From contig JANHCV010000001.1 in the NCBI GenBank assembly GCA_025594325.1, positions 62,001-126,000 on the forward strand: a stretch of DNA of 64,000 nucleotides, written 5' to 3'. The notes beneath the pieces were generated by a model, which made no database searches, was not told where the DNA came from, and saw nothing but the letters and a program-made list of their open reading frames with translations. This document shows, piece by piece, positions 1,742-64,000 of this stretch; within the stretch, counting starts at the first letter, position 1, and each line of letters starts with the position of its first letter. Origin of the DNA: Blastocladiella emersonii ATCC 22665 (Eukaryota; Fungi; Blastocladiomycota). Position numbers and translations under genes: made by a program.

Positions 1742-1813
1742 AGCGTCTTGGCGCAGAGGAAGCGCGCAGGGCTCATAACCCTGAGGTCGTAGGATCGAAA
1801 CCTACAGACGCTA
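1742..1813 (+). tRNA. Initiator tRNA-Met (anticodon CAT)
   Basis: 72 nt AGCGTCTTGGCGCAGAGGAAGCGCGCAGGGCTCATAACCCTGAGGTCGTAGGATCGAAACCTACAGACGCTA. It has an A1:U72 pair, AGCGTCT/AGACGCT acceptor stem, GGG/CCC anticodon stem with CAT, and a GATCGAAA T-loop (A54/A60), all hallmarks of eukaryotic initiator tRNA. T4 tracts lie downstream. Confidence 0.95.
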
Positions 1814-2139
1814 GCTGTTGCAACTCTCCTTTTGCTTTTGCGTCGCTCCGCCGCCATTTTGTAGCAGGGAGGGAAGGAGGGGGGGGGGTAGGCTGCAAGC
1901 GCTTGGTTGGGCAGGCAGACGTGCAAGACTTGGCCAATCCAAGATGCGTTCATGGTGAGCAAAGTAAGCCAACTGATCCTCTCTCATTCCCTTGGGGGGT
2001 GTATGTATGTATTTATCTATCTGGCTATCTATGTGATGTGATGTGATGACGACGTATCACTGTAGGTGAGAGATTTGAAAGCTTTCCAAGGAAGCGTGTA
2101 GTTGACTTAGAGTTGCCGCGCTCCCAGTATTGTGGACGC

Positions 2140-2390
2140 GATACCTGATACGGGAAAAGTTTTTTGGGCATGATACGATATTTGGCCCAGATTTTGCGTT
2201 CCTGGTGATACGAATACTGGGGACTTTTTTGCTACAAATCGCGATATTTCGGGCTCTGATACCAAAACTTGCGCGTTTTGGACCTGCCCGATACCAATAC
2301 CTGCACGTACAAAATCCGGGAGATACCGATACCTACAGACGAAAAGGTTGGTGATACCGATTCTTAAACTGTGGGGGATCAGGATATCAG
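2140..2390. repeat. hAT left subterminal GATAC(C/G) motif cluster
   Basis: Many GATACC/GATACG/AATACC copies directly inside the left TIR. Confidence 0.8.
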
Positions 2391-2473
2391 TTGAAGCTAA
2401 GTATGGCAAGGAGACAAGTAGAAATTACTAAACTAAGACTAGGATTGGAATGAACAACGTAAAGAATAATCGA

Positions 2474-5400
2474 CTAGTTTCTCACAACAGCCGCAGCAGC
2501 TTCCTGGGCCTTGGTCAACGCGTTGGCAGCGGCGACCTTGTCCTGGAGCTCGAGCTTATTCAAGATCAGAGCGCGGAACATCTCAGGGCCAAGACGCGAA
2601 CGATTGTGTCGAAGCACGGCCCAACAGATGGAAAAAAGTCGCTCCACTCCAGTGGTTGTAGTTGGCACAGGAAGGAGATTGAGAGCAACGCGAGAAAGCT
2701 CTGGAAAGCGGTGCTCGTGATCCTTCCACCACTTGATTGGATCTTGCATGCGGAAGTCTCTTTTGTTTGCCATGTTGCAGTAGGCAATGTAGGCGTCGTT
2801 TTCGTCTGTTCCTGCAACCGGAGCGTCATCGTCGTAATCAAAATCGGGATCAAAGTCCTGCTCGATCCCCAGCGGAGCGACAACAGGCGTGATGGGGACA
2901 ATCCCATTGCTAACGCGAGCACGCATCTCGCTAAGTGGAGCATGCACGAATTTCGCGTAGTCAACATTAGCAAGACCCTGCTCGCGGTATTTTTTCATGG
3001 TTATCAAGCCTTGTCCAAAAGGGCTGAGCCACTGGGCGACATTAAAAACATCAGGAAGTCGCGCGTAGTGCTTGTTGAGAAGACCGTAAGCAGCGATCGC
3101 AGTAATAGCCACAATCACCTTTGGCGGCTGAAGACGCAATGTGAGCTGCTCGGTAATGCGAGGGCATGGACCAGGAGCGGTGTGGAGCGTCTTTTTCGAT
3201 GCCGCCTCCTTCTCGTCCTTAAGTTTACGAGCAGAACAGTGCGCGTCGGTTGCGCCCATTGGGACAACGTTGACTCCACTTGAGAGAGCCAAGGCGGCAT
3301 CCCGCTTTCTTGCAGCACTGCGAGTCACAGCGCTATCACGCAAGGGAGTCACAGGCGCAAGCTCCTCTAGGGGCTCCAAGTCAGATTCGTTGTCATTGCG
3401 CAAAGCCTCCTGATCACAAGCATCCTCGGGGGCAATATCCTTGGAGTCTGAATCAGCATCAAAGAGGTACTCAATTGCATCGTCCGACATGAGAAGGTTC
3501 ATGCTGTAGTCCTCGGGCGTGGAAGCAACGCCAAGTGCAGCAAGAATAACTTTCTCAAAGTGATTAAAGTCTGCAGGGTGGACATGCTGTCGCACGTGGT
3601 CCTTGAAAGCAGTGAAGATCTTTTCATAAGTGAAGATTCCATGTGGAAGGGTCCAGGAGTGACGCCCTCGTTTAGTTTCGCTGTGACGCCGTAGATTGAA
3701 CCAAGCAGGGCTGAGATCTCTGTGATGATCCCCCAGTCCTTCTCTTCAAGGTTGAGCTCCGGGTAGCAGTGCTTGGCATAGACGTCATCAATGGCACCGC
3801 GAAGCTGCAGAAGGCCAAGAAGCGAGTTATGAGTGCTGAACCAACGAGTCTGGACGTCCTTGACAACGCATAAGGTCTTCAAACCGTGAGCTTTAGCCGC
3901 CTCAGCAAGGTTCTTGCGGTAAGCAGACTGATTGTAAAGCACGCAAATGAGAGGCTTGAACTTGGGGCACACATGGTGCAAGATGCCAATGATCCGCTGC
4001 ACGGCGCGGTTGATACTGTGCTGGATGCAAAACACAAGCACAATGTGCCCGCCGCCATGCTGCTGCTGAAGAACCCGGAGAGCCGCCTTGTTGGCAGAAG
4101 CATTGTTGGCCGCAATGGCGAAGACCCAGGAGATGTCAATCTTGTAATCTTGGAGCAAGTCGACAATGACCTGGGCAATACCCTCGCCATCCTTGGCATC
4201 GGTTGGCACGAGATCCAAGAGGAGCCTGTAGCGTTGACAAACACTGTCAATCGTGATCATGAAGGAAACGCGGACACCTGGAGACGAAAGTGGTAACCGT
4301 TAGCATCGATGCATGTTCTGTTGGTAGGGTTGGGTGTGGGCTGGAGAAATCAGACCAGCTGGTCCGATTTCTCTAGGCGGCCCAAGGAAAATCAGACCGG
4401 CCGGTCCAATTTCTCCAGGTGGCCCAAGGAGCTGCAACACAGGTGAGAAAACGTACCCATGAAGGAGATGCCGTTTGTCGAGGTCCACCCGTCAATCAGG
4501 AGCGTGAGGTCTGAGTCCTACTTGGCGACGAGAGCGCCTTGGCGCTTGTGGACGTGCGCTCCCCCACCGAGAATGTTCTTGGACACAGTCGTGCGGTGTG
4601 GGATCTTGACGCCAGGGCAGATGGTCGCAATGAGCTTGCGGAACAAGACAGAATTGACGACCGAGATGGACTGGTCCTTGCCGCACAGGAACTCACTGAG
4701 CGCGGCGTCAAAAGCACTCTGCGTGACCAACGACACTTGACCTTGCGGCGGGACGCCAAACATGTCGTTCACCTTGTCCTGCGGCGGCACGTCGTCCATG
4801 ACGGCAGACTCAGCGGCAAGGTCCAAGTTGGCTCAAAGGTGTTGATGGTGGTCGTAGAACGGCTTGAGCTTGGGCGAGCTCTTGGCGATCTTGTTGTGGT
4901 GCGTCATCATGTGCTTGCCAATGTTGGACCAGCTGGTCTTGTTTGACATCTTGAAGGAGGCCTTGTTGGGGTTCAGGATGAGGCAGATCTTGCACACGGC
5001 GTGGTCCTCCTTGAACTGGCTGAACGCGTGCTCAATAGAGGAGTTGCGGAAGTCGTGGTCCCCGACTTGAAACCCGGGTTTCAGGTCATGTGACCGCCCA
5101 AAACCGGTTTTCACCGCGCCAGATCGCGGCGACCCGGACCTGAACCTTGAGCTTCCCGCTCGCCTCTCACCCCCCGCACCCCTAATATAACAAGATGGCA
5201 GCTGATGGAGCTCTCGTACTTGGTGAAATGGACCTCAACCTCGAGGACCTAGAAGCTCTCCGCGACCTGCTGGCCATGGCCGCAAGATCCGTTGGGCACG
5301 AGTTGCGGTGGTGGTGGTAGGTGTAGAACAGGTCCTTGAGCGCAGTGCGCGCCTGGGCCTCGGGCGGGGGGTTGATCACCGACTTTTTCACCACCCGCCT

Positions 5401-5666
5401 GCTACCCGCCGTCTTGGTGACCAGGCACAGGGTCGCCGGCCGCGGCGTGGGGTCGCTGGCCGCGGCGTGGGGGCGGCGGCGCTCCCACCACCAGCAGACA
5501 CGGCGTCGTTGTCGCTGAGCAGGATCACGTTGTCGCCGTTGTTGCTGGGCTGCGCGGGGTTCTCGGCCGTGGTGGCGCGATGCCGCTTGCTGCCGCTGGT
5601 GGCAAACGCAGCCATGATTGACGCTGGCCGCTTGGCAGGTGGGGTAGGTCGAGAGTTTCGTGACAT
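2474..5666 (-). pseudogene. hAT transposase, multi-exon, inactivated
   Basis: BED finger (CKIC...HMMTHH), first catalytic motif LIDGWTS, CIQH (CxxH), TRWFST, and C-terminal dimerisation domain DPIKWW...VERLFS. Lesions: TAG at 4518-4520, second Asp read as AANNAS (4105-4107), and a frame change near 3600-3670. Intron 4278-4456 (GTACGT...CAG) splices in frame. The 5' exons are approximate. Confidence 0.9.
4341..4430. repeat. Palindromic repeat in a hAT transposase intron
   Basis: Units like GGAGAAATCAGACCAGCTGGTCCGATTTCTC. An inverted homologue lies at ~12085-12230. Confidence 0.85.
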
Positions 5667-6359
5667 TGCAGTGGTGGTGGTGCAACTAGACCAAATACAA
5701 GTCGATCGTCAAGAGGTTTGAAAGTCAACAGTTGGGCGAGAGGAGAGGTGGACTGCGCAGCGGAGCAGCGGGAGTGGGCGGGCTCGCGGACGGTGGCAGC
5801 CGCGGCCGCTCAATCGCCGAGATGATGTGCATTTTGCTCACGTGGCTCTCACATGATTACGTTGCAAGGCACGTCCCGCATGGCCGTGGCATGTACCAGC
5901 TCGCTCGGCCAACGCATCAAGCGCATCGTTCAGAACAGAACAGCGTGCAGGTGTACGCTAGGGCAGGAAGTCGCTGGTCAGCTCACTGAAGCAGTTGCAG
6001 CCTGCTGCTTGACTGCGCAGTGGTACCTCTCTGCACCCGCGCGCGCTGTGAGAAAGTCGTCACATGGAACGGCAGCGCCGCATCAAGCAAGCGAAGTTGG
6101 ACAGAGGCAAGGGTTGGAGTTGGATCAAAGCTGTGTGGTCACACGGCGCGTGGCGAGCTTGCGCCGCGAGCTTACCCTGGATCGCAAGGGCAGGATCAGC
6201 TTTGCACGATACGAGCAAAGATGCTCGTCCGTCCGCTTTACTACGGCGTGGGTCAGGACGCGGGCGATCAAGCGCAGCGTGAAGCTCGTGGTGCCTGGTT
6301 CGCTGCGCTGTGCAGGACGACGAGGGCATGCAACGACGTCATGAACGTCGCATGCGGAG

Positions 6360-6830
6360 GAGCGAGTACATCGCGATCCGCGGCTGGATGCGAGCGAGCG
6401 TCACAAGGAACGGGTGTAGCGCGATCCGCGGCGAGCGTCACGAGGAACGGGTGTGGCGCGATCCGCGGCGAAGTGTGGGCGTCGCGAAGAACGAGAGCAT
6501 CGCGATCGGCGAGGTGCGGGCGTCGCGACGAACGGAAGCATCGCGATCCGCGGCTGGATGCGAGCGAGCGTCACGAGGAACGGGTGTGGCGCGATCCGCG
6601 GCGAGGTGTGGGCGTCGCGAAGAACGAGAGCATCGCAATCCACGGCGAGGTGCGGGCGAGCGTCGCGAGAAACGAGTGCAGCGTGATCCACGGCGAGACG
6701 CGGGCGTCGTGAAGAACGGTCACAGCGCAATCCACGGCGAGATGCGGGCGTCGCGAAGAACGAGAGCAGCGCGATCCACGGCGAGGTGCGGGCTTTGCGA
6801 AGATTGGTCGCGACGCGATCCGTGGCGGGA
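6360..6830. repeat. ~44-bp degenerate minisatellite (about 10 units)
   Basis: Recurring GCGTCRCGARGAACG-N6-7-GCGATCCRCGGCGAGGTGYGG units. Confidence 0.85.
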
Positions 6831-7910
6831 TGCACCGCGTGTGGCGAATGCGACGTGGTGTGCAGCATGGAGCGGGCGGTGATAGGGACGAGGTCAACGA
6901 GTACTGAGGGGCGAGGTTGGGCGAGCGGCAGGTGAGTGGGCGGCATGTGTGTGGAACGGAGTGGGAGCTGTGTAGCGCGCCATACGCGCCGTGCGGCGAC
7001 AGGCCGAGCGCCGCGCATCGCGCGCGTTACGCCACGAGGAACATTCGCGACTAGGAGTTGGAAACATCGAGGCGTCCGTGTTGCAGCGGGGTGGGGGAGG
7101 CGCGACTTATCGCGCGGCGGAGGACGAGAATGGATGTTGAATGGCGGTGCGTCAGTACAGCGGGTCGCATCGCGAGGAGCGAAGAGCGAGTACAGCGTGG
7201 CAGGCAGCGAAGGGAGGGGTTTAGCGAGGGGCGGGGGAGCTGGCTGGCGCGGAGCGGGTGCGAAGAAAGGGGGATGAGGGAGGCGAGGGGCATGGTGGAT
7301 ACGCTGAAGGGCGGGGAACGAGAGCACGGCGTCATAGAGGGAAGGTTGCAAGGGCAATCACGCGATGCTAGAGGAGACCAAAGTAGCAGTTCGAGGTCAC
7401 GCGCGCGGGTTGCACTGCGAGCGAGCCTTGGCGCCGGTCCGAGTGGGAGCGGCACAAATGTGGCAAGCGGCGCGCCAGGAGACAAGGCCTCGCGGGACGA
7501 GGCGATGGAAGCGCTTGTGTTCAAGTCGCACAGGCGGGCGGCGGCGCAGTGCAGCGAGTTACATGTTCAGATCATCGGAATACATGGCAGGCGGGATCGG
7601 ACAAGAGGAGAGCCGGAGCTGGTCGCGGGAGGCGAGCGCGCGTTGTCCAATCGACTGGGCGTGGGCGTGGGACGCGAGACGAAGATCGCGCGTCGCGGTG
7701 ATATGTGATCCCACGTGCGGGCGAATTCGCCACGTGGCGGCAGGCTTATCGTTTTCGCTCCACGGGGATCAACGGGCCAGGCTGGCGCCGAGCCGCCTGC
7801 CCGCCCTCGCTTGCTTGCCGCCGTGCACACTCTCCCTCCCTCCCTCCCGCCTCTCTTCCGCCCCCGCTCGCGCATCTTGGATCGCTCCCTCCCAGAACGT
7901 GCTCTTGACC

Positions 7911-10900
7911 ATGGCATCGACACCCAACGCACCCGCCAGCCCGTCGGCGGCTTCCTTGGCCTCAACGCCGCCCGCGTTGCCCCGCCCAACGGCTTCCTTG
8001 GCCTCAACGCCGCCGTCGTCGCCGCCGCCGCCCCGTGGCCGCTCTCCCACCCGCGCCTCCTCACTGTCGCCGTCACCTGCACCCCATGCTGCGCGCCCCT
8101 TGCGTAAGCATCCGCCCATTGTCCAGTCTGAATCAGAGTCTTCGGACAGTGATAATGACGTTGACAAGGACGGTGCGCCAAAGATGCCTCCGCCCCCCTC
8201 GCCCACCGACTCGGCGATTGCCTCCTCGCCTGAGCCTCTGCGCGATGGAGCTGTCCGTGTTGGCGCGGGTGAGGTCGCTCTGCCCACCGCTACTGCCCCA
8301 CTAGGGGTGTGTGCGTTGCACACTCTGTCTCAGCAGTAGGCGACTCGGCTGGCTGGCAAATGACTGAACATCAAAGTCGAGTTGACGGGATGTGGTCCGT
8401 CTTGCTTGAGGGAAGCAGTTTTGCTAAGTCGAGCATGCGCCAGTCGCTGTCGCCCTGACCGCTGCTCTTAACAACGAGCTGCCGCCAAAGGAGTGGTCCG
8501 GTTGTGGAGGGCTTGCGGACGAGATCAACGCACTCGAGGTCAAAGATTTCGTTGGGTTGGAGATCGAGGCGACGCGCGTGTTTCGCGGCGGCCATCAAGT
8601 TCCACGCGTCGCGCACCGAGTTCTGCGCCGTGATGAGGACCTGGTCGCTCCAGTCGTTGAGCTGGCCTGGGTGCTGGCCCAGTACGACGTCTGCTCGCCG
8701 CGAGCCGAGGTACTCGATCACGCGCTGCGAGACGATGCAGTTGCGCAGGTCTTGGAGCACGTTGAGGAAGCTCGCGTCGCCCGACTGCCGCATCTGCTGC
8801 ACGTGGAAGAAGACCGAGTCAGAGGCGAGCCACTGATCGCGACCAATGTTGGCGTCAGTTGGAGTTCTGCTGACCGCTGGCCGCTCCTTGCGCTTGGACG
8901 CGCGCTTCTTCTGCTGCTGCTGCTGCTGCTGCTGAGGCTCGCCGTCGACCTGCATCAAGTCGCCATCATGAGCTGCATCCACCTCGGGTTCGGGTGCGCG
9001 TTTGACCGGCTGCTCAGATGGAACCGTGAGTGAGCGGGCCATGACGAGCTCGAACTGGAAAAAGTCGCCAAACGCGAGGACGTGCAGGCCGCCAAACGGA
9101 CGATGGTCGCGGCTCGGGTATAGCGCGTCGAAGCGCAAGTGCATTGCGGCGAACAGCTTGGCGTCGACCATGGAGATCTCGTCGATGAGGACAAACTTGA
9201 CGGGGCGGAACGACGCCTCGAGCTCGGCCTTGGCTTTGTCGCTCATCGGCTTGGTCGCCGAGACGATGGTACCGATACCACACATCAGCGTTGCCACGCT
9301 AGATGGCATTGAGCGTTGACTCGACGTGCTCAACGACGCGGCGCTCCTCAACGTTGAGCCCTTGAAGGTACGGAGCGAGTTGCTCCTGTCGCGCGAGCTG
9401 CACCCGGACGGCTGGCGGTGCGACACCACCGTCTGCTTGAACAAGTTGAGCGCGAGGTGGCTCCGCCAAGCGTTCTGCAGCAAACCGACGGGCATCCTCG
9501 TCGGCCTTTCTGGCCAGATCGGCGTAGTTGGCGAGTTGCGCGAACCATGCCGGATCCGAGTCGACCTTGAGCAGCTGCTGGCAAAGCTCGAGTAGCAGGC
9601 ACGGGCGCGTTCGAGTTTGAGAGCAGTCCGTAGTGTACTGCCGACATGAGGAGCATGGCCGCGTGCTGGTCGTTCTGGGAGATGATCGAGAGGATCTCGT
9701 GCAGGAAAGCGTCTTTGCCGTGAGCTTCTTGCGCGATGCCGACTGGCATGATCTCACCGTCAGCCTCGTCGTCGTTACCCATGCCAGTACCGCCGGCGCG
9801 TCGAAGGTCGACCTGCTTGGGCGTCGCGCTGTTGTCGGCCTCCGAATCGTCGACCAGCTTGCCGGGTGACGTGTCCACGTAGTCGCGGAAGTTGTTGATC
9901 CACCGGAGCCGGTCGCTGCCCTGCTCGAGCGTGCTTTTGAAGAGATCGAGCGTCTGCGACCACGTCTCGCCGCGAGCCGGAGCCACCTTGTTGATGGCGC
10001 GGAACGTCTTGAACAGGATCATGGAGATCATGGCGCGCGACTCGGTGCTGCCGATATCTGACGACTGGCTGACCTGCTTGTTGAGCAGCGGCACGGGAAC
10101 GACCTTGGCCGCGCGCATCGCGACGACGAGCTTGCCGACTGCAGCATGGGTGCCGCGGAACTTGTACCGCGGCTCGGCGTGGCGACCGCGCTTGGCGCGC
10201 GGCATGTTGCCGTTGTCCGCATTGTTGTCGGGCACGGACTGCTGCGAGCGGTTCGTCGTGGGCTTGATGGGCTCCACGCGACAGCACCAGACAAAGTCGT
10301 AGAGCGAGATCGACTTGAGCTCGCTGGGCCGGTGCATGTAGTGGTCGCTGATGGTGACTTTGTCAGTGATTGGGCGGTTCTCGAACGTGATGCGCTCGTC
10401 GTCGTTCTTGTCGTCCTCCTGCTCGAGCTCGCGTTCATTGTCGACTGCCGCGGCGCCATCCTTGCCGACGCGCTGCGCGTCAGTTGTGTTGCCTGATGCG
10501 TCCGAGCCCGCCGCGTTTGTGACCATGCGCAGGAACTGGTAGAGCGGGCCGTGGGCGAAGATGTACGTCGTGGAGACCCACGTCTCCTCGCCCTTGCGGA
10601 TCAGGTCAAGCGCGATCTGCTGCCCGTTGATCTCACGCGACGTGGTCAAGCGGTTGACGAGGCCGCGCAGAATGGAGCTGATGGAGAGCTGGAGCGTAAC
10701 TTCTTGGCGCGCTCAAGGGGGGCGTACGTGCTGTAAGAGTATGGCGGCACCTTGGCGACGTAGTTGGTGATGTGGTACATGACATTTGCGGGGTTGAAGC
10801 CAAGAAGCAGAAAACCAGATCTCAGGCTTCCTTCAGAGCTCCATGTAACGCGAAGAAAATGGACACAGAGCGCTTCAAGAGAAGGATATCTGAGCAAAAA

Positions 10901-13108
10901 AAACAGTCAAAGAAGTGAATTCACGATTGTGATGAACACGGGGGTAGGGAAGAAGACGAAAGACAGAAGTGGATCAAATCGGTCATGACTCCGCTAGATG
11001 ATGCTTTCTATGGTGCCAACCTTGTTGCATAGAGTTACAGGATAGATTGTATCAGAGTATTTAGAGAAGAGTGAGGAGAAGATTATTCGAGCGCGACCGA
11101 GACGCGTTGCGACGCGTGTTGATGGGAGTGGCAGAAAAGTCAGGCGTGCCAAATGGCCCAGCTTGAGCGCGAATTCAGCTCCACAGAAACTCAGCCTACT
11201 GCTGAGAACCTGCTGGTGCTATGGCGCCCGCTGCTGCTCTTGGCCTCGCTGGCGGCGGTGATGGCGAGCGCGACCTCAAGGACGCTATGGAGGAGACCCT
11301 TAAGGGCGGCGGCGTGTTCCTCAGGCTCACCGGCAACGACGTCAAGGACCCTCGCAAGACCGCGCAGTATGCCCTCGTCTGCTTGCTGCAACCTCTCGGA
11401 CTTGTGGTGCTGATAACAAACGAACGTATGGTTCTGGGAGGCGTCTTCGCGACGCTCAAGCAGGCCGTCCCTGACAGGCCCGCCTTCACCAAGTTCGCCC
11501 GCGAGCTGCTGCTGGAGCTGGCACCAGAGCAGTCCAACACGGCCACGGGTGCGCACGGCGCGACGTCGGCTACCTTTGCACTGGCCGCTGCCACCACTTC
11601 CTTGTTGTCAGCGGCCACTGCTGCTGAGCTTGACGCCAAGCTCTGCGAGGACGGTATCCCCGAGGTCGCGCTCTACACCTCCACCGTGGTACGTTGTCCA
11701 ACTGGTTTACCTCCAGGTCCTGGTGCTGACCAATTGATCTCTGTCCAGACTGGTGGTCTCGTGAAGGTTGAGCCTCCCGGCGCCGATACCAACCCTTCCT
11801 TGTCGTCTGTTCCCCCTGTCGCTGCGCCAACAGCCGCCCCGGCTGTATTGACGTTGGCCCCTGTCCCGCCCAAGGCGTCCAAGCGCGCGCGCTCGGCGTC
11901 CATGGGTGCCAAGGCCAATAAGCGCGCGGCGTCCGCCGCAGCTGTCGCTGCTGCTGATCCCGCTGCTGCCGCCGCCGCCGAATCTGACTCCAAGGACCCC
12001 CGGAACAAGGTGCGTAACCTCTCTCTTTCCTCGCCCTCAACCTCCCACTGCACTCCGCTGATCGCCACGAATGGACCAGACGGGCCTGTCCGATTTTCCT
12101 CGGGTCACCAGGAGAAATTGGACAGGCCGGTCTGATTTTCCTTGGGTCGCCTGGAGAAATCGGACTGGCTGGTCCGATTTTTCTTAGGTCACCTGGAGAA
12201 ATCGGACCGGCTGGTCTGATTTTCCTCGAGCGTCACCATCATCACTTGACCATCCAATGACGACTTGTACTGACCAACGTTCACTTGATTCATCCCAGGC
12301 CATGCTCGAGACCACGATTGGAGGAGTGATTGCCTGCGCGCAGCTGGGCGTCGGCATTGTCGCCAACACCGAGTTCATGCAGTCCAAGGCCGCGCTCACT
12401 CCCGAGTCGATCCGCAAGGAGCTCAGCAGTGGCAACCCCGTGCACAAGATTGTCAAGATGGGCGCTGACCGTGCCCTCGCCCGGTCCAGTGTTTTGGGCG
12501 TTTCCGAGGCTGTGCGCATGTTTGTCGAGCTCGTGGGGTGCTCCCAGAACCTCAAGGCCCTTGTCAACAAGTACCCCCAGCGCAATGTCATGGTCGGTGA
12601 TCTCGCCTTCCTGTTCTTTGCTAAGAGGACGGCCAATCCGAAAGCGACCCCGCTCGCCAAGGAAACCGCTCTCAAGCGCACCTTTCTACCATTTTTCAAA
12701 CTCCCTCACATCTTGAAGCGCCTCCCCCCAACGAGTTCCGGCGAGTCCCAGGCTCGCTTTTGCTATATCTCGTACTGCTGCATGGCCACGGTCTTGCACA
12801 TTGTGGTCGGGCCAGCTCTTGTCCCCATCATCCTCGGCAAGCTTAGTTCCGCCACTTACTCGTCCTTTGGGAACAAGTTTGCCACCTTGTACACGTCCCT
12901 GATGGGCCTGACTGAGGCTGACATTGTCTTCCTGCGCGCGGAGCTTGAGAAAGTCGCCCCAGCGGCTGACTACAAGCCGCTCTTCCAGTTCCAGAAGACC
13001 CTGGACGTTGATGGCAAGGAGCACAACACCATGGACATCATCACCAAGGCGTTCCATGAGCTGTCCTCAATCAGTCTCCCTGCCGAGATCCCTGCTCATT
13101 GGCTTTGA
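7911..13108 (+). CDS. Unknown second gene of the hAT unit, split by Helitron2 insertion (7911-8300, 11209-12009, 12299-13108)
   Basis: Removing 8301-11208 joins ...ACT GCC CCA|CCT GCT GGT GCT ATG in frame (TAP|PAGAM). Phase-0 intron 12010-12298 (GTGCGT...CCAG) joins in frame to the 12257-13108 ORF. No recognisable domain. Confidence 0.7.
8301..11208 (-). mobile_element. Helitron2-type element with internally deleted RepHel
   Basis: On the minus strand it starts TTCTCAGCAGTAGGCTGAG (5' hairpin) and ends GCCTACTGCTGAGA-cag-AGTGTGCAACGCACAC-acccCTAG followed by T. The 14-bp ATIRs are at 11194-11207 and 8328-8341. RepHel remnants lie inside in the same orientation. Confidence 0.85.
8371..10800 (-). 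pseudogene. Helitron Rep/PIF1-helicase remnant
   Basis: Rep tail YHITNYVAK, DHYMHRPSELKSISLYDF and MILFKTFR motifs. PIF1 motifs VLIDEISMV, FGGLHVLAFGDFFQF and QQMRQ. No HUH motif, Walker A or helicase C-terminus seen; frameshifts present. Confidence 0.85.
12085..12230. repeat. Palindromic repeat array in the intron of the hAT second gene
   Basis: About 4 units of GGAGAAATCGGACCGGCTGGTCYGATTTT, an inverted homologue of 4341-4430. Confidence 0.85.
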
Positions 13109-13287
13109 GTCGTGCTGCTTTCAATGTATTTGTGTTCTTAGTTCACTTTGAATAGCGTGGTGCAAAGACTTGCTGCTGAACCTTGACTTTACAAGCGATT
13201 AGTGCTGAATCTTGAGTTAGCGTTGAGAAATATGCTCAAGCGTGCAGGATAACCCTCAATACTGGAATGTTATGAGGTGGTGCGCCA

Positions 13288-13575
13288 CGATACCCATAAA
13301 CATGATTGCTGGGATGTATAGCGATAGGGGATACCGATACTTGGAATTTTTGAGTTGCGCCTGAGGAGCGATACCGATACTTGGAGTTATTGAGATGCGC
13401 CTCAGGAGCGATACCGATACTGACGGGTGCGCGTGGGACGATACCAATACTGCCCCCGGAAGCGCCAGGAATGGCGATATTTTGGGGGGCGATACCGATT
13501 TGTGCTCTACTGAGCTCGCAGCTACGCTCGCCAATACCAATACTGGTCCTATTCGCGGAAACCAATACCAATACT
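13288..13575. repeat. hAT right subterminal GATACCGATAC/AATACCAATAC cluster
   Basis: Many GATAC/AATAC copies immediately inside the right TIR. Confidence 0.8.
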
Positions 13576-15078
13576 GTGGACCCGAACTGACCGCGGCAAC
13601 TCTAAGGAGGCGTACCCGCTCGCCGTGATCGTGGCAGCAACCAACGCGACTGCGCGGGCCGTTCAGCGCTGATGCGGGGCGCGCGAGCTACGGGATCGCG
13701 ACGAGAGCGAGTGAGACACACTGCGCGGGCGCGGATGTGCGAGAGACGGCGAGCAGGGCGGCGGCGGAGCGGCATCCACGTCGGTCTTGGGCCCATCACC
13801 ACGAGAGGTGGGCGGGCGGGCGACCAACGTTGCCGCCGCGCGTGTGCGCCGTGACGAGCGGGTCGCGGGGACGCGCACCGTGACGTGGAGCCAAGCGTGC
13901 GAGTGCGGGTGCGCTTCGTCGTGTAGCGTTAATCGGTCGGGCGGCAAGCTCCACTTGGTCGGCGGGCGCGGGTTGAGTGTGCAGCGACGGCGGCGTGGAG
14001 CGGCGGATGGGATGGCGGCGGCGGCGAGCGTGTGCAGGAGCGTCAGTCGGTGCAAGGGGACCCGCCCGCTTATGTAGGGGCCGGGCGGGAGCGAGCGAGC
14101 AGGGGGCGGGGGCGGGTGGCTGCGGAAGCGCAGAGTCGATCGCCGAAGCGCCGAAGCGGCCAACGCGCAGCGCGCTGATCAAAAAACGCGCATCACGTGT
14201 TTTTGCGACGCGTCTCGCACTGTCTCGCGCGTCCGCCCCGAGCCGCACCCGACGCGTCCGCGCCACCACGGACCACCATACACGATGCAGAAAACAATCG
14301 TAACAACTCAAACTTCAGTCCTCGCGTTTGTTAAGAAACAGAACGCTCCGCCGCGCAGTCTCGTCACGGACCGCAACTCGCAATACGTCTTGGTGCTCGC
14401 GCGCAACCTACTAGCCACCCTCACAGACACACCACCAGGAGCTCTCTATCATCACCCGCACCAACGGTACTGCTGGCCGGGGCTGTGGGGCGCGGGTCAA
14501 AGCGGGCATGAAGCAGACCGCCTCGAGTTGACCTCAGCGAGCTTGCGGATCCGCTCCTAAGAGATGTCTAACATACCAAACGTGTCAGGAAGTTCAACGT
14601 CGGGCACCGAAGTGACGCGAGTGTTGCGGACGGAAGGCCAGGAAACCATGGGTGGCGGCCGAGCGCGGCGGAGTCCTAAAGTGGAGCCCAAGACGGGAAC
14701 CAGCTGCTGGCCACGCCGACCACCGCGACGGTCGCGACTTCTCTCCCATACCTAACATGCTGCCGACGATAAACCTTCACCACTTACTGCAAATGTATAA
14801 ACAACATGAAAATGGCCTCTGCGTCGTGCCATTTGGTCAAATGAAGCTGTACCTCCTGCCAGCACGACGAGGCCGCCGCACAGCGCCACACTGGCCTTGC
14901 ACCATTGTTGCGGGCGGGTTCTGATCGGATATGACTCGGACAGCAAAGAGCCCATGTTGGGCGCGTCCGAAGCTATTTATGAAGCCTACGACCACGCCTC
15001 GAGGCGCCCACACTGCAATCCCCGCTGTTCCACTTTGCCAGCGAGGGCCGCTTCAAGCTTGCAATTTTCAAGGAGTGG

Positions 15079-16639: not shown

Positions 16640-16855
16640 TGAGTTGCATAGAGTTAGAGGGTAGATTTATTAAGAGGATTTGGAGAAAATTAAGGAGAAG
16701 ATAATTCGAGCTCGACCGAGACGCGTTGCGACGCGTGTTGATGGGAGTGGCAGAAAAATCAGGCGTGCCAAATGGCCCAGCTTGAGCGCGAATTCAGCTC
16801 CACAGAAACTCAGCCTACTGCTGAGAATAAGTGTGTGCGCAGCACACACACCTAG
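16640..16855 (+). mobile_element. Helitron2-family terminus (ATIR + GTGTGTGCGCAGCACACAC hairpin + CTAG)
   Basis: GCCTACTGCTGAGA at 16813-16826, hairpin 16831-16849, CTAG 16852-16855. 16640-16828 is a direct homologue of ~11020-11208. Confidence 0.75.
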
Positions 16856-56065: not shown

Positions 56066-58585
56066 ATGGCCACCGATCCCGCTTTGCGCATCGCCGAGGA
56101 GTTTCAGGTCCTGCAGGCGCGCAGCCAGGACCTCTTCAGCGGCCTTCGGTAGGCATCACACTCTATGCTGCTATTGCACGGCAGCAGGTCGCTGATTCTC
56201 CACAGGGACCTCGCGTCGCACACCCCGCCCAAGGCGTGGAGGCCCTACTTCCAGCGCGCTTTTGCCGTCTTTACCAAGCTGTGGAAGTTCCAGCAGCTCC
56301 ACCGCCTGACACTCGAGAAGGAGGAGTCGTACGGCCTCAAGCGCCACGAGGTGGGCGAGATTGCTTCCAGGATTGGCCAGCTCTACTACCAGTACGTCCG
56401 AGCCGCGTCACGTCGCGCTGTTCAGCGCCAAGAGCTAACTCTGCATTTTCTCACTCGCCTCCACACAGCTACTAGTGCATTTCTCGCTCCTCCGCCTCGC
56501 CGCATCAGCGACTCTTTGGCTGAACTAACCATACTCGAGTAGCCTGCGCACCTCGGACACGTCGTTCCTCGTTGAGGCCTACACCTTCTACGAAGCGATA
56601 TGGGACCGCAACTACTTCCAGGACGTCATGGCGACGAGAATGTGCGCTTCGTGTTTTTTTTTTTTTTTTAACCTCGCAGCCTCCCCTGCAAACTCACTCT
56701 TGCGCGCCCTGTTGGTCGATGCGGCGGCCGTAGAACACACGTCGCTTCGAAGCGGCTACGGTACTGTTCGCGCTTCATGATCGTGGCCCTACTCGCGGGT
56801 CGGTGGGACCGAGCTCAGGCCCTCGCCATCGAGATGAAGCGCTTTGTCGACGAGTTTGCAGATATGCTGGACCCGACCGACAAGGAAGGTTGGGGCATGG
56901 TCTACGCGGAGATAGCGGGGTTTCTCGACGTACGTAACCTCCCACTTGGCTCGATCATTGGGTTCACCTCACATGTCATGCTTGGCTCTCTGTAGTCGCT
57001 CCTCCTGGCGTCGGGCAGCGCCGTAATGCGGCAGAACCCTGCCGGTACCCGCCTTCCGCCGCACGATCCGTCCCGCGGAAAGACGCTAGTCAAGAAGGCC
57101 GTGATCTGCGGGTGCTGGTCGCACCAGCCAAGCTTTTCCGAACTCTCTCTTGGTGCGCATACTTGCTGTCGTACGCGGGCAAGACTTGGCATATCGTAAC
57201 GCGCGCGTCTCCTAGACATGTTCCGCATCCTGCAGCTGCTCGAGCGCGAGCCCGTCCGCGGCGCCACCACCAACGACGACGACGCCACGGACTGCCCACC
57301 CAAATACCTGCTGCACCTCCCTGCGGCCTCCAACATCCTCGCACATCTCGCGCTCTCAGTCAAGGTACGAGTGTCAGCATCGCCCTGGCACCGTCGCGTG
57401 CGCCTGTTTACAGCTCAAACTTACCTCTTCCACTTGATTGCGCGTAGGAACTCTCGCCCACCGACTACATGTTCTTCTACTTTTCTGGGCCTGGTCGTCT
57501 TGCGAGTGGTGCTTCCACCTCCATGGATCTACTGCATCTCGGCGTCGATACCAAGGAGATTGTCGCCTCCGCGGATTCGGGTACGAACGGCACCGCCGCG
57601 GGCAACGAGCACCTCCACGAGCACCGCCTCCACCTCTCGGATGTGCTGTCTTTTCTGCGCAGGCCCTTCTTCGGCGTCATTGATTGCCCAGCTGCCCACG
57701 CGTTCCGGGTACGCTGTCATAACTCGCGTGTGTGTGCGAAACCTGTCGTGCACTCCTGCTAACTGCTACGCGTCCCCACCCGCCGCTTCTCCACGTACCA
57801 CGTGTAGAAAATTCCGAAACTCTACCAGGCCTCGTTCATGTTCCTTTGCTCGCCGCAAGAGTACCCTGAGCGAGAACGAGGTACGCCCATCAACCTTAGA
57901 TCAGCCGTCCCTGTGTCTCACGGTCGAATGACTTTTCCCTGTGCCCGCCCCCGCGCTCGTTTCTCGGTCTGGTGTAGTCCGCTTCGAGCTTCGGAACACC
58001 GGATCCATCTTCACCCTCTTCCTAGCGCAGCCGCTCACTGCTATCGTCGAGCTCTGTGGGCTGCCCCCGATCGGGTCCACAGAATGGGACCTTGCACGCG
58101 CGGCCGCCACGGAATGGGAGCAGGATATCCTCACAGCGCTGGTCAAGCACGACGATACGCGTACGTTCTTTCTATTTTTCGTCCTTGGCCTCATGTCCGC
58201 GCACATTCTCCAATCGACCACACACACGCGACCACCGACCAACTGCATGGGGGCTTACCTCGTGCGCAACGCTCCTCGTCTAGCCGCATTCCTCCTCTCG
58301 ATCCTCGGCGACGACTTTCTATCGCGTTTCGTGGTTCGGTTCGTCGTGTGCCGCGTCGTCCTCACGCATCACGTCCACTTTATCAAGACCACGGTTCGCA
58401 TACCTCGGTCCAAACGCTAGCACCGTCCGCCGCGTTGCTGACACTCCGCCCAACGACGAGTGTAGGAGCTGCCGTGCTGCCATCCCGATCTTTCTGACAC
58501 GCAGTGGACGGACCTCGAAGTCATCTCGCGCGAACGGTTCGGCCGCATCGTTCGTCTCCTGGATGCGACGGCGTACTTTCGATGA
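56066..58585 (+). CDS. SCAI: SCAI-like protein, many introns
   Basis: LFSGLRDL...W..YF.RAF..FTKLWKFQQ.HR....YGLKRHEVGEIASRIGQLYYQY; later MFRILQLLEREP and CGLP..G motifs; last exon 58505-58585. Confidence 0.88.
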
Positions 58586-58657
58586 TATTATATTTTCTCC
58601 CATTCTTTGATCATATCTGCTCACGTCTCTCCCTTGAACGATCCCTGGCCATTGGCC

Positions 58658-58880
58658 TGACGAAGGCCGGGCACGTCTTCACGATCGAGCCCATGATCAA
58701 CGAGGGTACCCACGCCGACGACCACTGGCCCGACCAGTGGACCGCCGTCACGCGCGACGGCAAGCGCTCGGCCCAGTTTGAGCATACGCTGCTCATCACC
58801 GAGACGGGCGTCGAGGTGCTGACCCTGCGCGACGGCCATGACGTGGTCATGGACGGCCTCGCGCCGCCCGAGCACCTCAA
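58658..58880 (+). repeat. Inverted duplicate of the MetAP1 3' coding end
   Basis: Reverse complement of 59557-59779, 223 bp with 2 mismatches by eye. Confidence 0.92.
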
Positions 58881-59531
58881 AGCCGCAGCTTGTGTCGTGA
58901 GGTTTGTCTTGTCACTGACAGCTCATCCTTGATACGCGGTGCACGCTTGTACTGGACGTATTGACACGCCAAAACGCACCACCCTTTTGATTGTTGCTCC
59001 AGATTCGGTGCTTTGACGGCCATGACAGGGGGAACTTGGGACTGTTTGCGATAATCGCAAATCGACGATGGCCGTGACCATGGCCACGGACGACGACAAT
59101 GGCCACGACGGTGGCCATCGTCGTTTAAGGGTTCAAGTCAATATTACCGGCACCCTCTCGTTAGGACCTCGTACGTGTAGCCTAAGCTTGTCTCGGTATC
59201 CTTTAAATTGATGGTTATTGTATGGAACAGGAAGCGCTCGGCGGTCGCCCAACGGGGTCAGGGCCCTGTGACGAGAAGCTGTTTGAGTCCTCCGCCAAAC
59301 TAACGTGCGTCTGTTTCTTCACTCGGATTTTCGAAATCGTGTGCCAAGTGAGACACGGTGTGAGGAAGTTTTCCGTTGAGAAGTAAGCAGCGAGGAGAGG
59401 GTGATGCGAAGGTCGCGAACCACGCGAGAGTTCGAACCCCATGCTGACGGCGGTCAGAAAGGAGAGAAACAAGATGCATCGGGGAAAAGCGAGTATATAT
59501 TGGCTCGTTCGACGTTCGTAAACAAGGATCC

Positions 59532-60826
59532 CTAAGCAGACTTCTCGAGCTCGCCCTTGAGGTGGTCGGGCGGCGCGAGGCCGTCCATGACCACGTCATG
59601 GCCGTCGCGCAGGGTCAGCACCTCGACGCCCGTCTCGGTGATGAGCAGCGTATGCTCAAACTGGGCCGAGCGCTTGCCGTCGCGCGTGACGGCGGTCCAC
59701 TGGTCGGGCCAGTGGTCGTCGGCGTGGGTACCCTCGTTGATCATGGGCTCGATCGTGAAGACGTGCCCGGCCTTCATCACGCCGATAGCCTTGTTTGCCG
59801 AATAATGAGGTACGTCGGGAGCACAGTGAAAGTAGCGGTGAATACCATGCCCACAGTACGTACGGACGACGCTGAACCCATTTCCCTTGGCCACCTTCTC
59901 GATCACGCCGCCCAAATCGCGGTACAGGACGCCCGGCTTGCACATTTCGATGGCCTGCTTGAGGCATTCGCGCGTGGTATCGACGAGGGCGCGGGCCTTG
60001 GCGTCGCGCCACGCCTTGTCGCCGATAAACACGGTCTCGTTGAGGTCGGCGTGGTACCCGTCCTTGAACACGGACACGTCGATGTTGAGGATGTCACCGT
60101 CCTGCAGCGGGCGTTGGTCGGGGATCCCGTGGCAAATGACCTCGTTGACGGAGGTGCAGCACGACTTGGGGAACCCGACGTAGTTGAGCGGCGACGGGTA
60201 CGCGCCGCGCTCGATGGTCGCGGCATGCACCACCGCGTCGATGGCGTCGGTCGTCGTGCCCGGGACAGCTGCAGCGATGCCCGCGTCGAGGACCTCGCGC
60301 GCGAGCTTGCACACCACGCGCATCTTCTCGATGGCGTCGGGCTTGAGCACCTCGATGCGGCGGACGCGCTTCTCCTTCTCCTCGGACAGCGGGCGGCCCG
60401 TCTCGGCGTAGTCGGGGCGCTCGATCCCGGCCGGGACCTCGCGGCGCGGCGACAGCGGGTACTGCGCGCGCAGCGTGCCCGTGTACTTGAAGCGGCGCTC
60501 CGCGATCCAGGGGTCGTAGATGGCGGCTATTGATGCGTAGAAGTGGGAGCAGGCACGGTGCGTGGTGTGTGGTGGCGGGAAGCTGGTGAGTGAGCCAACC
60601 GTCCTTCCTGCTCGAGCAAAGCGCGGTGCGGAGATCAGCGGCGCGTACCCTGCCCGTGAAGCTGCTTGTGCACGGCCCAGTTGGCGCGGAAGCACGCTTG
60701 CGAGCAGAAGCGTGCTGCGTCGCGCGGCAGGTCGAGCTTGATGCACGTCGGGCACACGAGCGTGGCGGGCTGCCCGCACCCGGCACCGGCGCACACCTTG
60801 CTTTCGGGCGCTGCGGCGTCGGCCAT
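59532..60826 (-). CDS. MAP1: Methionine aminopeptidase 1
   Basis: N-terminal C6H2 zinc finger exon ([17 protein letters not shown]), then [38 protein letters not shown]; one intron. Confidence 0.96.
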
Positions 60827-61109
60827 GGTCACTTGCGTCGGGTGCAGATACGTTGCAGGGCTCTGGGACCGTGCCTTTACACGCAGAAATGGACCGCGCG
60901 GGTCGCTTGCCCGCCGCGAAGGCAGCGACGCTCGCCGGACTGCTCGCCGGAGCGCGGCGCCACAACATCCCGCCCTTCATCACCTGACACGTTGCAAGGC
61001 TGGAGCAGACGCTTGGGGACGTGTCGCTCAACGAATGATATATATATCTTAATGCTCGACAAGGGACACACAGACAGCCGACCCGCTCAGCCCGGAAGCG
61101 CGGTCCCAC

Positions 61110-64000
61110 TCAGCGGCCCTGCGGGTACTGGTTGGGCGGCGACGCGCCGCCGTAGTAGGACGGGTACGGCGAGTAGCCCTGCGCCGCGCCGTTGCCGTTG
61201 ACCCCGGGCGCCGCGGCGCCGGACCCAGCGCCCGCGGGCGAGTAGACCGGCGACGACGGCGAGTAGCTCGGGCTGGTGGGCGAGTAGCTTGGCGACGTCG
61301 GCGAGTACGTGGGCGACGTGGGCGAGTAACTCGGGGAGGTCGGCGAGTAGCTTGGCGACGTGGGCGAGTAGCTGCCAGCGCCGCCAGAGACCGACGCAGC
61401 TCCGGTCGCACCGCGCGGCGAGTAGCTCGGAGACGTCGGGGAGTAGCTGGGCGACGTCGGGCTGTAGCTCGGGCTGGTAGGCGAGTAGGACGGGCTCGTC
61501 GGCGAGTAGCTTGGCGACGTGGGGCTGTAGCTCGGCGACGTCGGCGAGTACGACGGACTCGTTGGAGAGTACGACGGCGACGTGGGCGAGTAGCTGGGGC
61601 TCGTCGGCGAGTACGAGGGCGACGTTGGCGAGTAGCTCGGGGAAGTGGGCGAGTAGCTGGGCGACGTCGGGCTGTAGCTCGGACTCGTGGGCGAGTACGA
61701 CGGGCTGGTGGGCGAGTAGCTCGGGGAAGTGGGCGAGTACGACGGGCTCGTCGGCGAGTAGCTCGGCGACGTGGGGCTGTAGCTTGGCGACGTCGGCGAG
61801 TACGACGGCGAGGTCGGACTGTAGCCGGGGCTCGTCGGCGAGTAGCTCGGCGACTGCGCGCCGTACGACGGCGACTGGCCGCCGTAGGCCGGCGACATGG
61901 GCTTGTACCCGGGGCTGGCCGACGAGTACCCTGGACTCGTAGGCGAATAACTCGGGCTGGCTGCCGCGAGACCCGCACCACCGGAGCCCAGGCCGTAGCC
62001 GGGACTGCTGGCGTAGCCCGGCGAAAACCCGCCCGCACCGCCGCGCTCCATGTACCCGGGGCTCAGCGCCGACTTGGCATGGATCGACGGCGTCCAGCCG
62101 CCCGTACCACCGCCGGTCGTGTCGCCGCGGAACGGCGAGAACGAGCCGCCCGCACCAGCACCGAACCCGTGGCCCATGCTGTAGCCGGGCGAGCTGGGCC
62201 GCGTGGGCGACATGGACCCGTAGGGGGTCTGCGCTGGCGACGATGCGCCGTACGCGGACCCGGCGCCGTACGCGGCCGCATCCTCCATGCCGCCGACCAT
62301 GTGGACCTTGAGCATCTCCTCGTTGAGCAGCACGTCGAACGAGCCGGAACCGAGCGGCGCGACCTGGCCCAGGATAATGTTCTCGGCGACACCCGTGCAG
62401 TCGTCGAGGGACCCGACGCCCGCCGCGTCGACGAGAATCTCGACCGTCTCCTCGAACGAGCACCGCATGAGCGCGGACGCCTCGGTGCGGTTGATGCCGT
62501 GGCGCGTGATGGACATGAGGTACCCGCGCGACGTCATGACGTCGACCAGCATGGCGAGGTGGCGGTAGTTGACGTACGAACCGTCGCGCTCGATCACGTT
62601 GCGGATCTCCTTGAGGACCGCGGCGCGCCCGGCCTCGATCCCGAGCACCTCAATGATCTCGGTGCAGTTATTCGAGTACACGAGCTCGGGCTTGACGGAC
62701 GGGTGGCAGATGACCTCGCGCAGGTTGATGCCGTCCGTCTCGAGGATCCACCGCTCCACGTCCTCGAACTCGCCGTCGCGCGTCATGCGGCGGATGCGCT
62801 GCTTGTTCATGTACACGCGGTCAATGTGGTCGATGCCGCGCAGGCACACGCGGTCGAGGAGGACCTTCTCGAGCTCGCGCAGGAGGCGCTCCTCGTCGGC
62901 CTCGCCGTCGTCGCCGCCCATCTTGTCCTTGAGCGGGCGGCACCGGATGACGGGGTGCGACAGGTCGCCGCTGGCAATCACCTCCATCTTGGCGCCGTTC
63001 TTGGCAAAGTACTGCGAGATGATGGAGCCGACCTTGATCAGGTCGTCGAGCTCCTTGTCGACGAGCACGTCAAAGTCGAGCGTGAGGCGGAGCAGCCACG
63101 GGCTGAGAATGTCCGGGTTGGCCTCGGCCTCGATCTCGTAGTAGGACTCGACCATCTCCTTGTCCTCCTCGACCACCGACGACCGCGGGTTCGGGTCGTA
63201 GACGATCTCGGTGCGCACCGTGGCCTTGCGCAGCGACGCGTACTCGAGCTCCGACTGCACGGCCTTGGCCGCCTCCATGGACTCGGCCACGTCGTCCTGC
63301 AGGTACACGGTCAGCGACGGCGTCTTAATGTTCGTCGCAACGTTGATGATCTCCTTGAGGCGCGGCACGCCGAGCGTCACGTTCTTGGACGAGACACCGG
63401 CAAAGTGGAACGTGTTGAGCGTCATCTGCGTCGCGGGCTCGCCAATCGACTGGGCGGCAATGATGCCGACCATCTCGCCAGGGTGCACGAGCGACTGCGC
63501 GAAGCGGGTCTGGATTTCGCCGACCACGTAGTCGAAGGCGCGCGAGTCGAGGCGGTACTCCTCGAGGACGCGCTTGGTGGCGAGCGTGGACCGTACGAGC
63601 GCCTGCATGAGCAGCGTGGCGTTGCGCTGCGCCTCGACCGAGATCTTGTCCGTGCCCGGGATGACAACGAGCCCGTCGCACAGCGCCCGCACCTTCTTGA
63701 CGACGTAGTCGGGGTGCAGGTTAGACGGCTTGGACTTGTCGATCTTGAACAGGTTCTGCGCGTTCCAGATGATGCGGTTGAGGTTGCACGGCAGCGGCCA
63801 GCGCGCGTCGCCGCGCGGGAAGATCTGCTGCAGGTCGCGCCGGTCGCGCAGCAGCTGCTCGTACTCGGCGTTGAGGAGCTCCTGCACCTCGGCCGACTGC
63901 ATCTCGCGCTGGATACCGAACTCGACGGTGCCCGGCCGGAGACCGCTGCTACCGCCCACGTCCGTGACGTCGATGCGGTACCGCCGGTCAAACTTGGCGT
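61110..64000 (-). CDS. RPB1: RNA polymerase II largest subunit, 3' part (runs off the window)
   Basis: AQSIGEPATQMTLNTFHFAG, LGVPRLKEIIN, ITRHGINR, CSFEETV, ENIILGQ, YSPTSPS CTD. Confidence 0.99.
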   Translation of the reverse strand, partial: AKFDRRYRIDVTDVGGSSGLRPGTVEFGIQREMQSAEVQELLNAEYEQLLRDRRDLQQIFPRGDARWPLPCNLNRIIWNAQNLFKIDKSKPSNLHPDYVVKKVRALCDGLVVIPGTDKISVEAQRNATLLMQALVRSTLATKRVLEEYRLDSRAFDYVVGEIQTRFAQSLVHPGEMVGIIAAQSIGEPATQMTLNTFHFAGVSSKNVTLGVPRLKEIINVATNIKTPSLTVYLQDDVAESMEAAKAVQSELEYASLRKATVRTEIVYDPNPRSSVVEEDKEMVESYYEIEAEANPDILSPWLLRLTLDFDVLVDKELDDLIKVGSIISQYFAKNGAKMEVIASGDLSHPVIRCRPLKDKMGGDDGEADEERLLRELEKVLLDRVCLRGIDHIDRVYMNKQRIRRMTRDGEFEDVERWILETDGINLREVICHPSVKPELVYSNNCTEIIEVLGIEAGRAAVLKEIRNVIERDGSYVNYRHLAMLVDVMTSRGYLMSITRHGINRTEASALMRCSFEETVEILVDAAGVGSLDDCTGVAENIILGQVAPLGSGSFDVLLNEEMLKVHMVGGMEDAAAYGAGSAYGASSPAQTPYGSMSPTRPSSPGYSMGHGFGAGAGGSFSPFRGDTTGGGTGGWTPSIHAKSALSPGYMERGGAGGFSPGYASSPGYGLGSGGAGLAAASPSYSPTSPGYSSASPGYKPMSPAYGGQSPSYGAQSPSYSPTSPGYSPTSPSYSPTSPSYSPTSPSYSPTSPSYSPTSPSYSPTSPSYSPTSPSYSPTSPSYSPTSPSYSPTSPSYSPTSPSYSPTSPSYSPTSPSYSPTSPSYSPTSPSYSPTSPSYSPTSPSYSPTSPSYSPTSPSYSPRGATGAASVSGGAGSYSPTSPSYSPTSPSYSPTSPTYSPTSPSYSPTSPSYSPSSPVYSPAGAGSGAAAPGVNGNGAAQGYSPYPSYYGGASPPNQYPQGR
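61236..61844 (-). repeat. RPB1 CTD heptad array
   Basis: YSPTSPG, then 19 x YSPTSPS, then YSPR plus a 14-aa linker, then 6 further heptads. Confidence 0.95.

Follow-up and report, generated by a model that had tools for sequence, protein, structure and literature searches.

A hAT transposon of Blastocladiella emersonii that probably carries an orphan gene beside a pseudogenised transposase

This study concerns a stretch of 64,000 nucleotides from Blastocladiella emersonii ATCC 22665 (Blastocladiomycota; assembly GCA_025594325.1), namely JANHCV010000001.1:62001-126000, referred to below as the window. Within it, an element at positions 2108-13604, counted from the window start (~64.1-75.6 kb of the contig), is best read, with somewhat better than even confidence, as a solitary, dead, no longer autonomous and cargo-carrying hAT transposon with a pseudogenised transposase and one orphan gene, here called gene 2. 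The element measures 11.5 kb with a later Helitron insertion and ~8.6 kb without it. Its cognate ends would enclose the transposase pseudogene and an orphan gene of 666 codons, the two standing head to head on either side of a GC-rich spacer of 2.2 kb. Both genes appear to have moved as one unit, and gene 2 would have belonged to that unit at its last move, either as a passenger or as an element-specific open reading frame (ORF). A cargo-carrying hAT of such a kind is uncommon but already known; new here are the diverged Blastocladiomycota member and the unusual head-to-head layout. An initial annotation, made from the letters of the window alone, had proposed a hAT lineage of ~8.6 kb equipped with a dedicated helper or anti-silencing gene. 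One pair of terminal inverted repeats (TIRs) around a transposase and an unassignable spliced gene is what stands of that interpretation; the lineage and the helper role do not, with gene 2 being single-copy and without a homologue and the transposase a pseudogene. The genome paper on B. emersonii (PMC9730499) contains no treatment of transposons.

The TIRs of hAT elements are short, begin with (C/T)A(G/A) and are accompanied by subterminal arrays of short repeats and by an 8-bp target-site duplication (TSD). In the element, a 13-bp TIR beginning with TAGAG and subterminal GATAC arrays were found at the following positions:

2108-2120 (+ strand): left TIR, TAGAGTTGCCGCG, an exact match, on the 3' side of the transposase gene
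2121-2470 (+ strand): subterminal region of the left end, comprising nine GATAC motifs, each on the + strand, and an inner CAGTATTG block that has a mirrored counterpart at the right end
13240-13591 (+ strand): right subterminal region with 9 GATAC motifs (+ strand) and a 40-bp tandem repeat at 13330-13421
13592-13604 (- strand): right TIR (TAGAGTTGCCGCG inverted), an exact match, with a read contig across the junction

The earlier claim that matching 13-bp TIRs and GATAC arrays enclose both genes was thereby confirmed. Over 2106-2123 and 13589-13606 the TIR match reaches 17/18. Perfect inverted pairs of 13-mers are expected ~2.3 times by chance in 13 kb, and the TIR alone is therefore not significant. 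GATAC occurs nine times in 2108-2470 (363 bp) and nine times in 13240-13604 (365 bp), on the + strand only. This density of ~25 per kb compares with 0.5 per kb in the element interior and 0.3 per kb in the remaining window, and the 50-80-fold enrichment is limited to the outer ~360 bp of each side. The longer motif GATACCGATAC gave 9 matches with at most one mismatch, compared to 0.21 expected, and an inverted CAGTATTG block lies directly inside both TIRs. Homology to the paralogues of the flanks breaks off exactly at 2107/2108 on the left and at 13604/13605 on the right. Together, the arrays, the mirrored block and the divergence of the flank paralogues precisely there make a convincing case for these ends as the true termini. 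The initial annotation had considered that each TIR end might have its own partner and TSD; within 20 kb, neither another TIR partner nor 8-mers that match were found. Similarly, the interior from 2471 to 13239 contained no further TIRs and no GATAC clusters or hAT remnants.

The transposase gene comprises two features:

2474-5666 (- strand): hAT transposase pseudogene with a match to Pfam PF05699, readable hAT motifs, two in-frame stops and one frameshift
4278-4456 (- strand): transposase intron with GTACGT...CTAAC...CAG signals and two 42-bp palindromic units (4336-4454)

The hAT dimerisation domain PF05699 was detected at residues 282-345 of the ORF 2474-3595(-) with an E value of 1.5e-14 (54 bits, cut-off 21.4), and the translation contains the conserved hAT blocks DGWTS, CIQH (C..H), TRWFS and VERLFS. 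Atlas language-model features connected the protein to hAT/ZBED1 RNase-H clusters (core 0.94, 177 shared features). With both the dimerisation domain and the blocks of the RNase-H-like core present, the predicted protein is assigned to the hAT superfamily. The Pfam core models stayed below significance (DUF659, E 0.12). A BED-like CxxC...HxxxxH stretch lies at ~4990-4890, with no Pfam zf-BED match at E up to 10.

The identity of the minus-strand gene running from 5666 to 2474 had thus been recognized correctly, and it was its intactness that did not hold. An in-frame TGA (4835-4833) and an in-frame TAG (4520-4518) both have coding frame on either side, and a one-base frame change occurs near 3660-3630 (~3650), where there is no spare sequence for an intron. 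When GT...AG pairs were enumerated around both stops, no frame-keeping intron that removes either was found. Because the frame is interrupted by two stops and a frameshift, the element would be non-autonomous today. The NCBI annotation holds two N-terminal fragments only (163 and 93 residues) and leaves the catalytic core unannotated; the 93-residue fragment forms a 90% cluster with one member from one contig. Two word searches for relatives of the transposase were blank, probably owing to the length window and low-complexity words.

The transposase intron is bracketed by a 9-bp direct repeat, TCCTTCATG (4258-4466, minus strand), for which ~0.008 occurrences are expected by chance. One copy stops 1 base short of the donor; its partner begins 12 bases past the acceptor. 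Because of this flanking repeat, the intron together with seven extra in-frame codons looks like an insertion of ~191 bp that became spliced out; no TIRs bound it.

Gene 2 is composed of the following parts:

7911-8300 (+ strand): first 130 codons, rich in Pro/Ser/Ala and including an acidic patch; GC shows no codon-position pattern, and the coding status is uncertain
11209-12009 (+ strand): middle part, in frame with 7911-8300, with a non-repetitive stretch of ~90 residues, an Ala/Pro-rich linker and a basic patch
12010-12298 (+ strand): intron with GTGCGT...CTGAC...CAG signals and 3.5 units of the 42-bp palindrome (12062-12231), also present in the NCBI model
12299-13108 (+ strand): last exon, an orphan domain of 270 residues with coding-like GC contents at the first, second and third codon position (GC1/GC2/GC3) of 0.55/0.43/0.75

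Once the Helitron and the intron are removed, 7911-8300, 11209-12009 and 12299-13108 merge into a frame of 666 codons with no stop. The plus-strand reading frame that had been proposed for 7911 to 13108 after Helitron removal was therefore borne out, with canonical signals for the predicted intron. Its 270-residue tail is helical and contains one strongly hydrophobic 19-mer. A hydrophobic helix at residues 554-580 would suit a membrane location of the protein, and the basic patch a nuclear one. The order GC3 > GC1 > GC2 holds in the middle and C-terminal exons and is missing from the first 130 codons. For this reason the true start may be the ATG at 11221, and any present-day product of gene 2 likeliest begins there, downstream of the Helitron, as judged from composition. 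The 3' part of the gene corresponds to NCBI H9P43_000065 / KAI9188644.1.

Gene 2 is single-copy and an orphan. Read contigs from four DNA runs of one sample (X1 and X2 among them) were compared at a likeness threshold of 85%. Positions 11382-13371 were covered by a single read contig with 0 differences, and nothing else was found at ≥85% likeness. The depth over gene 2 equals that of individual Helitron copies (35.8 vs 31-42 in X1; 143 vs 134-168 in X2), and the NCBI protein is a singleton 90% cluster from one contig. Searches for relatives gave no match in Pfam at E up to 10, none among PDB sequences, and no relative of two of its domains in the ESM Atlas, where the recognition scores were low (1473 and 1795). 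In a word search of 5.8 billion clusters and in an exhaustive phmmer search of 1.84 billion representative proteins, the sole match was the gene itself. The initial annotation had been unable to assign the ~270-aa C-terminal domain, and this remained so after the Pfam, PDB, Atlas, word and phmmer searches. Profile and structure prediction on 12299-13108, which it had put forward as a check, brought no assignment either: besides the lack of a Pfam match at E up to 10, the AlphaFold single-sequence models of the C domain and the middle domain reached predicted local distance difference test (pLDDT) scores of 37.6 and 55.3, respectively, which is too low for a fold search. A comparison of gene 2 with the element's own transposase showed no similarity.

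A parent copy of gene 2 in the host, the mark of Pack-type elements, was not found in the read contigs over 11382-13371 or among the annotated proteins. Capture of a host-gene fragment is not upheld because it needs such a copy. Conservation of the second gene in other copies or in related elements, as expected of an accessory gene, was not found, and neither read contigs nor protein searches contained a second copy of the two-gene unit. In one single-copy read contig, a stretch resembling 12079-12102 (palindromic unit) is followed directly by one resembling 13405 onward (GATAC array), the shorter side being 24 letters long; this contig is possibly a deletion derivative or a relative of the element elsewhere in the genome.

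As in ToxhAT, one TIR pair surrounds a hAT transposase gene and unrelated coding DNA, and joint movement of the two would fit this arrangement. The reading as one unit is favoured because the ends are cognate, inner ends are lacking, and 110-180 bp separate the end of each gene from the subterminal arrays, so that no surplus DNA is present. It is further favoured because the transposase and the tail of gene 2 have a common lower GC and CpG content, in addition to the shared intron array. For the transposase and the gene 2 C-terminal exon, GC is 0.52-0.58 and the observed/expected ratio of CpG is 0.73-0.96; this ratio is 1.1-1.4 in other long ORFs of the window.

The array in question is built from the 42-bp palindromic unit, with 2.0 copies in the transposase intron and 3.5 in the gene 2 intron. 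Positions 4344-4430 and 12097-12183 are 89% alike when complementary, that is, in the same sense for both transcripts, vs 74% in the other orientation. The palindrome was not found elsewhere in the window and the 5.5 kb upstream (~70 kb), and read depth over it showed a slight excess only. The initial annotation had based the kinship of the two genes on a common intronic repeat. The likeness of the arrays was reproduced, but homology is confined to the 42-bp units. The idea of whole-intron homology ("introner") was rejected, given that outside these units the tails reached p ~0.055 and the heads were not significant. By this alignment the array was copied and not the intron around it; the shared repeat indicates co-residence, with a shared local history or local copying of both genes, and not function. 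As RNA, the arrays 4336-4454 and 12062-12231 fold into long hairpins of -59.9 and -81.4 kcal/mol, with z scores of -6.2 and -7.4, and both may be sources of double-stranded RNA in the pre-mRNAs.

Several points weigh against the reading as a cargo-carrying hAT element. With one copy known, the joint transposition of both genes is deduced. The 8-bp TSD is absent, and the 13-bp TIR by itself is at chance level. Transcription and splicing of gene 2 are predictions from sequence, and its first 130 codons are without coding-like composition. Furthermore, read contigs cover the right junction, while the left junction rests on comparison with the upstream paralogue, and the rearrangement that would have removed the TSD is postulated, not seen.

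The missing TSD had been reported from the start, and it was confirmed: the left 8-mer AGTTGACT and the right 8-mer AGGAGGCG agree at 4/8 positions, and moving the element end by 2 bp does not restore a duplication. The left flank consists of two blocks:

1884-2062 and 2062-2107 (+ strand): duplicates of sequence that lies 7.4 kb and 2.6 kb upstream, respectively

The first block is 99.4% identical to its upstream counterpart and the second 95.7%, and the latter counterpart continues uninterrupted into unrelated DNA. Homology of this second upstream block ends at the first base of the TIR. Since this upstream copy has no break at the corresponding position, the left junction resembles a normal, clean insertion into a paralogue of the upstream sequence, with AGTTGACT as the probable target. 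The right flank from 13605 is multi-copy in the reads, and in front of its other copies lies a different sequence, ...GCGCTTGC, which is absent from the window and the 5.5 kb upstream. The right junction is real, as a read contig spans 11182-13692 with 0 differences. The two flanks thus represent different sequence contexts, and for this reason loss of the TSD through a rearrangement at the right end is likely and the simplest account. An adjacent deletion, or another end-associated rearrangement, would have replaced the DNA on the right side of the element and thereby removed the duplication. hAT elements cause end-associated rearrangements; Ac/Ds ends provoke rearrangements of their flanks, as proposed for the element here, and adjacent deletions are known for Ac/Ds and Tam3.

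The left flank as a whole is a patchwork of local duplicates, and the upstream copy has a 4.76-kb insertion between both blocks. The 99.4% block starts at the edge of the sequence fetched upstream (record 56518-62000), so that the duplication may be longer. Five bases past the point where homology stops, the upstream copy has TAGAGT, identical to the first six TIR bases. In the right flank, 13605-13750 has a depth 2.6 times (X1) and 6.8 times (X2) that of single-copy sequence, and a variant with a 5-base insertion occurs at 13652.

Recombination between two copies of the family is the main alternative to adjacent deletion for the absent TSD. More generally, the two ends may come from different copies of one hAT family, either in a recombinant or as neighbouring same-orientation copies that bracket trapped host DNA with gene 2 (macrotransposon/Pack-type). 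We regard such an origin as unlikely, albeit with several observations in its support: the absent TSD, flanks from two unrelated sequence contexts, and a central spacer and gene 2 5' part that are host-like in GC and CpG. Another contig of single-copy depth resembles a portion of the right subterminal region, which implies at least one further fragment of the family, and same-orientation local pairs have been proposed as a route to Pack-hAT elements (PMC8903248). The version with trapped DNA, however, would need two further precise deletions, given that no inner TIRs, GATAC clusters or hAT remnants are present between 2471 and 13239, and in the recombinant version the resulting element would already have held both genes. 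Neither adjacent deletion nor recombination between copies requires gene 2 to be host DNA.

It is quite improbable that gene 2 is not functional at all, either as a chance open frame in GC-rich DNA or as a relic of an unrecognised element, with the NCBI model being an ab initio artefact. Such a view is consistent with the lack of a homologue, a gene model predicted from sequence, the low language-model recognition scores and pLDDT values given above (1473 and 1795; 37.6 and 55.3), the lack of a codon-position signal in the N-terminal 130 codons, and the Helitron that interrupts the gene. Yet by our own estimate an open frame of 283 codons in DNA of 58% GC is expected ~0.07 times per window. 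In addition, GC3 > GC1 > GC2 is found in two separate exons, canonical donor, branch and acceptor signals join two exons in frame, and the frame is continuous across the Helitron site.

We also consider it very doubtful that the element represents a hAT lineage of two genes, with gene 2 serving as a dedicated helper or anti-silencing factor like mudrB, TnpA or the Myb-like ORF1 of PIF/Harbinger. The compact symmetric layout, with both genes finishing beside the subterminal arrays, would suit it, as would the similar composition of transposase and gene 2 and the hairpin-forming intron array common to both in the same sense relative to transcription. The lack of a host parent copy of gene 2 argues against simple transduplication, and the gene 2 frame is still open vs three lesions in the transposase. 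This open frame is weak evidence, however, as ~2 lesions are expected under neutral decay (P ~0.13, own estimate), and the intron homology is confined to the repeat units. A dedicated-helper lineage is not upheld because it needs conservation, which was tested and not found: neither a second copy nor a homologue was detected among 1.84 billion representative proteins and the family libraries. The still bolder idea of a self-regulating two-gene family with one surviving copy, in which gene 2 would be a new kind of hAT co-factor and the paired intron hairpins would couple expression or splicing or feed RNA interference that limits copy number, is highly improbable. After weighing the lineage and capture readings, what is left is gene 2 as an orphan gene living only inside a dead element.

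Two further features lie between the exons described above:

5667-7910 (no strand): spacer, GC-rich, 2.2 kb, between the divergent genes, with a 44-bp minisatellite at 6394-6803
8301-11208 (- strand): nested Helitron with a PIF1-like helicase gene (Pfam PF05970), defined by read-contig depth and loose ends

The spacer minisatellite comprises 8.4 copies of 44 bp with higher-order periods of 92 and 136, and neither the spacer ORFs nor the antisense-strand ORFs gave a Pfam match. The Helitron family is 15-40 times deeper than single copy in the read contigs. Its ends were placed at 8300/8301 and 11208/11209 on the basis of the many contigs that terminate at 8299/8300 and 11208/11209 and whose flanks are unrelated; the 3' end resembles 16643-16827. 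Helitron copies in the reads differ chiefly by transitions (C>T and G>A at ~70-85 sites, A>G and T>C at ~50-70, each transversion type at ≤30), a bias that hints at deamination-type decay of repeats in the B. emersonii genome. Rfam and tRNA scans found nothing inside the element; the sole match, given by Rfam (64.8 bits) and ARAGORN, was a tRNA-Met (CAT) gene at 1742-1813 (+), 295 bp to the left of the hAT end.

Two-gene DNA transposons include MuDR (mudrA/mudrB), En/Spm (TnpA/TnpD) and PIF/Harbinger (ORF1 and transposase). They resemble the element in having a transposase and one further gene within one TIR pair. In contrast, their second gene is conserved across copies or species and its role has been tested, whereas such conservation was not found here and the superfamily differs. 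Among hAT elements, the earlier statement that they encode a single transposase was too strong: Pack-hAT elements carry host genes (PMC8903248), and ToxhAT of Pleosporales wheat pathogens is a hAT-bounded element of 14.3 kb that has eight ORFs and TIRs of 74 bp (PMC6737239). The element shares with ToxhAT its TIR boundaries, a hAT-like transposase next to unrelated genes, a transposon-rich region and invasion by other elements (PMC6737239). ToxhAT, however, occurs in several species and its eight ORFs have recognisable domains, while here one orphan gene is present in one copy in one genome, and the 14.3 kb and 74-bp TIRs of ToxhAT compare with 8.6 kb, 13-bp TIRs and a head-to-head gene layout. 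With maize Ac/Ds and Pack-hAT elements (PMC3260210, PMC8903248), the element has in common short (C/T)AG TIRs, subterminal arrays of short motifs and foreign DNA between cognate ends. Pack-type elements differ in being non-autonomous, with fragments of host genes that persist elsewhere, whereas the element here has a transposase gene, although a dead one, and a cargo that looks whole and is without a parent copy.

The locus is useful as a well-delimited example for annotating the unstudied B. emersonii mobilome, as an instance of a transposon that houses an orphan gene, and as a clean illustration of rearranged flanks next to a hAT end. If the orphan gene travels with the hAT transposase and acts for it, hAT would join the superfamilies with two-component coding capacity, and gene 2 as a co-factor would provide a handle on the contest between element and host silencing in an early-diverging fungus.

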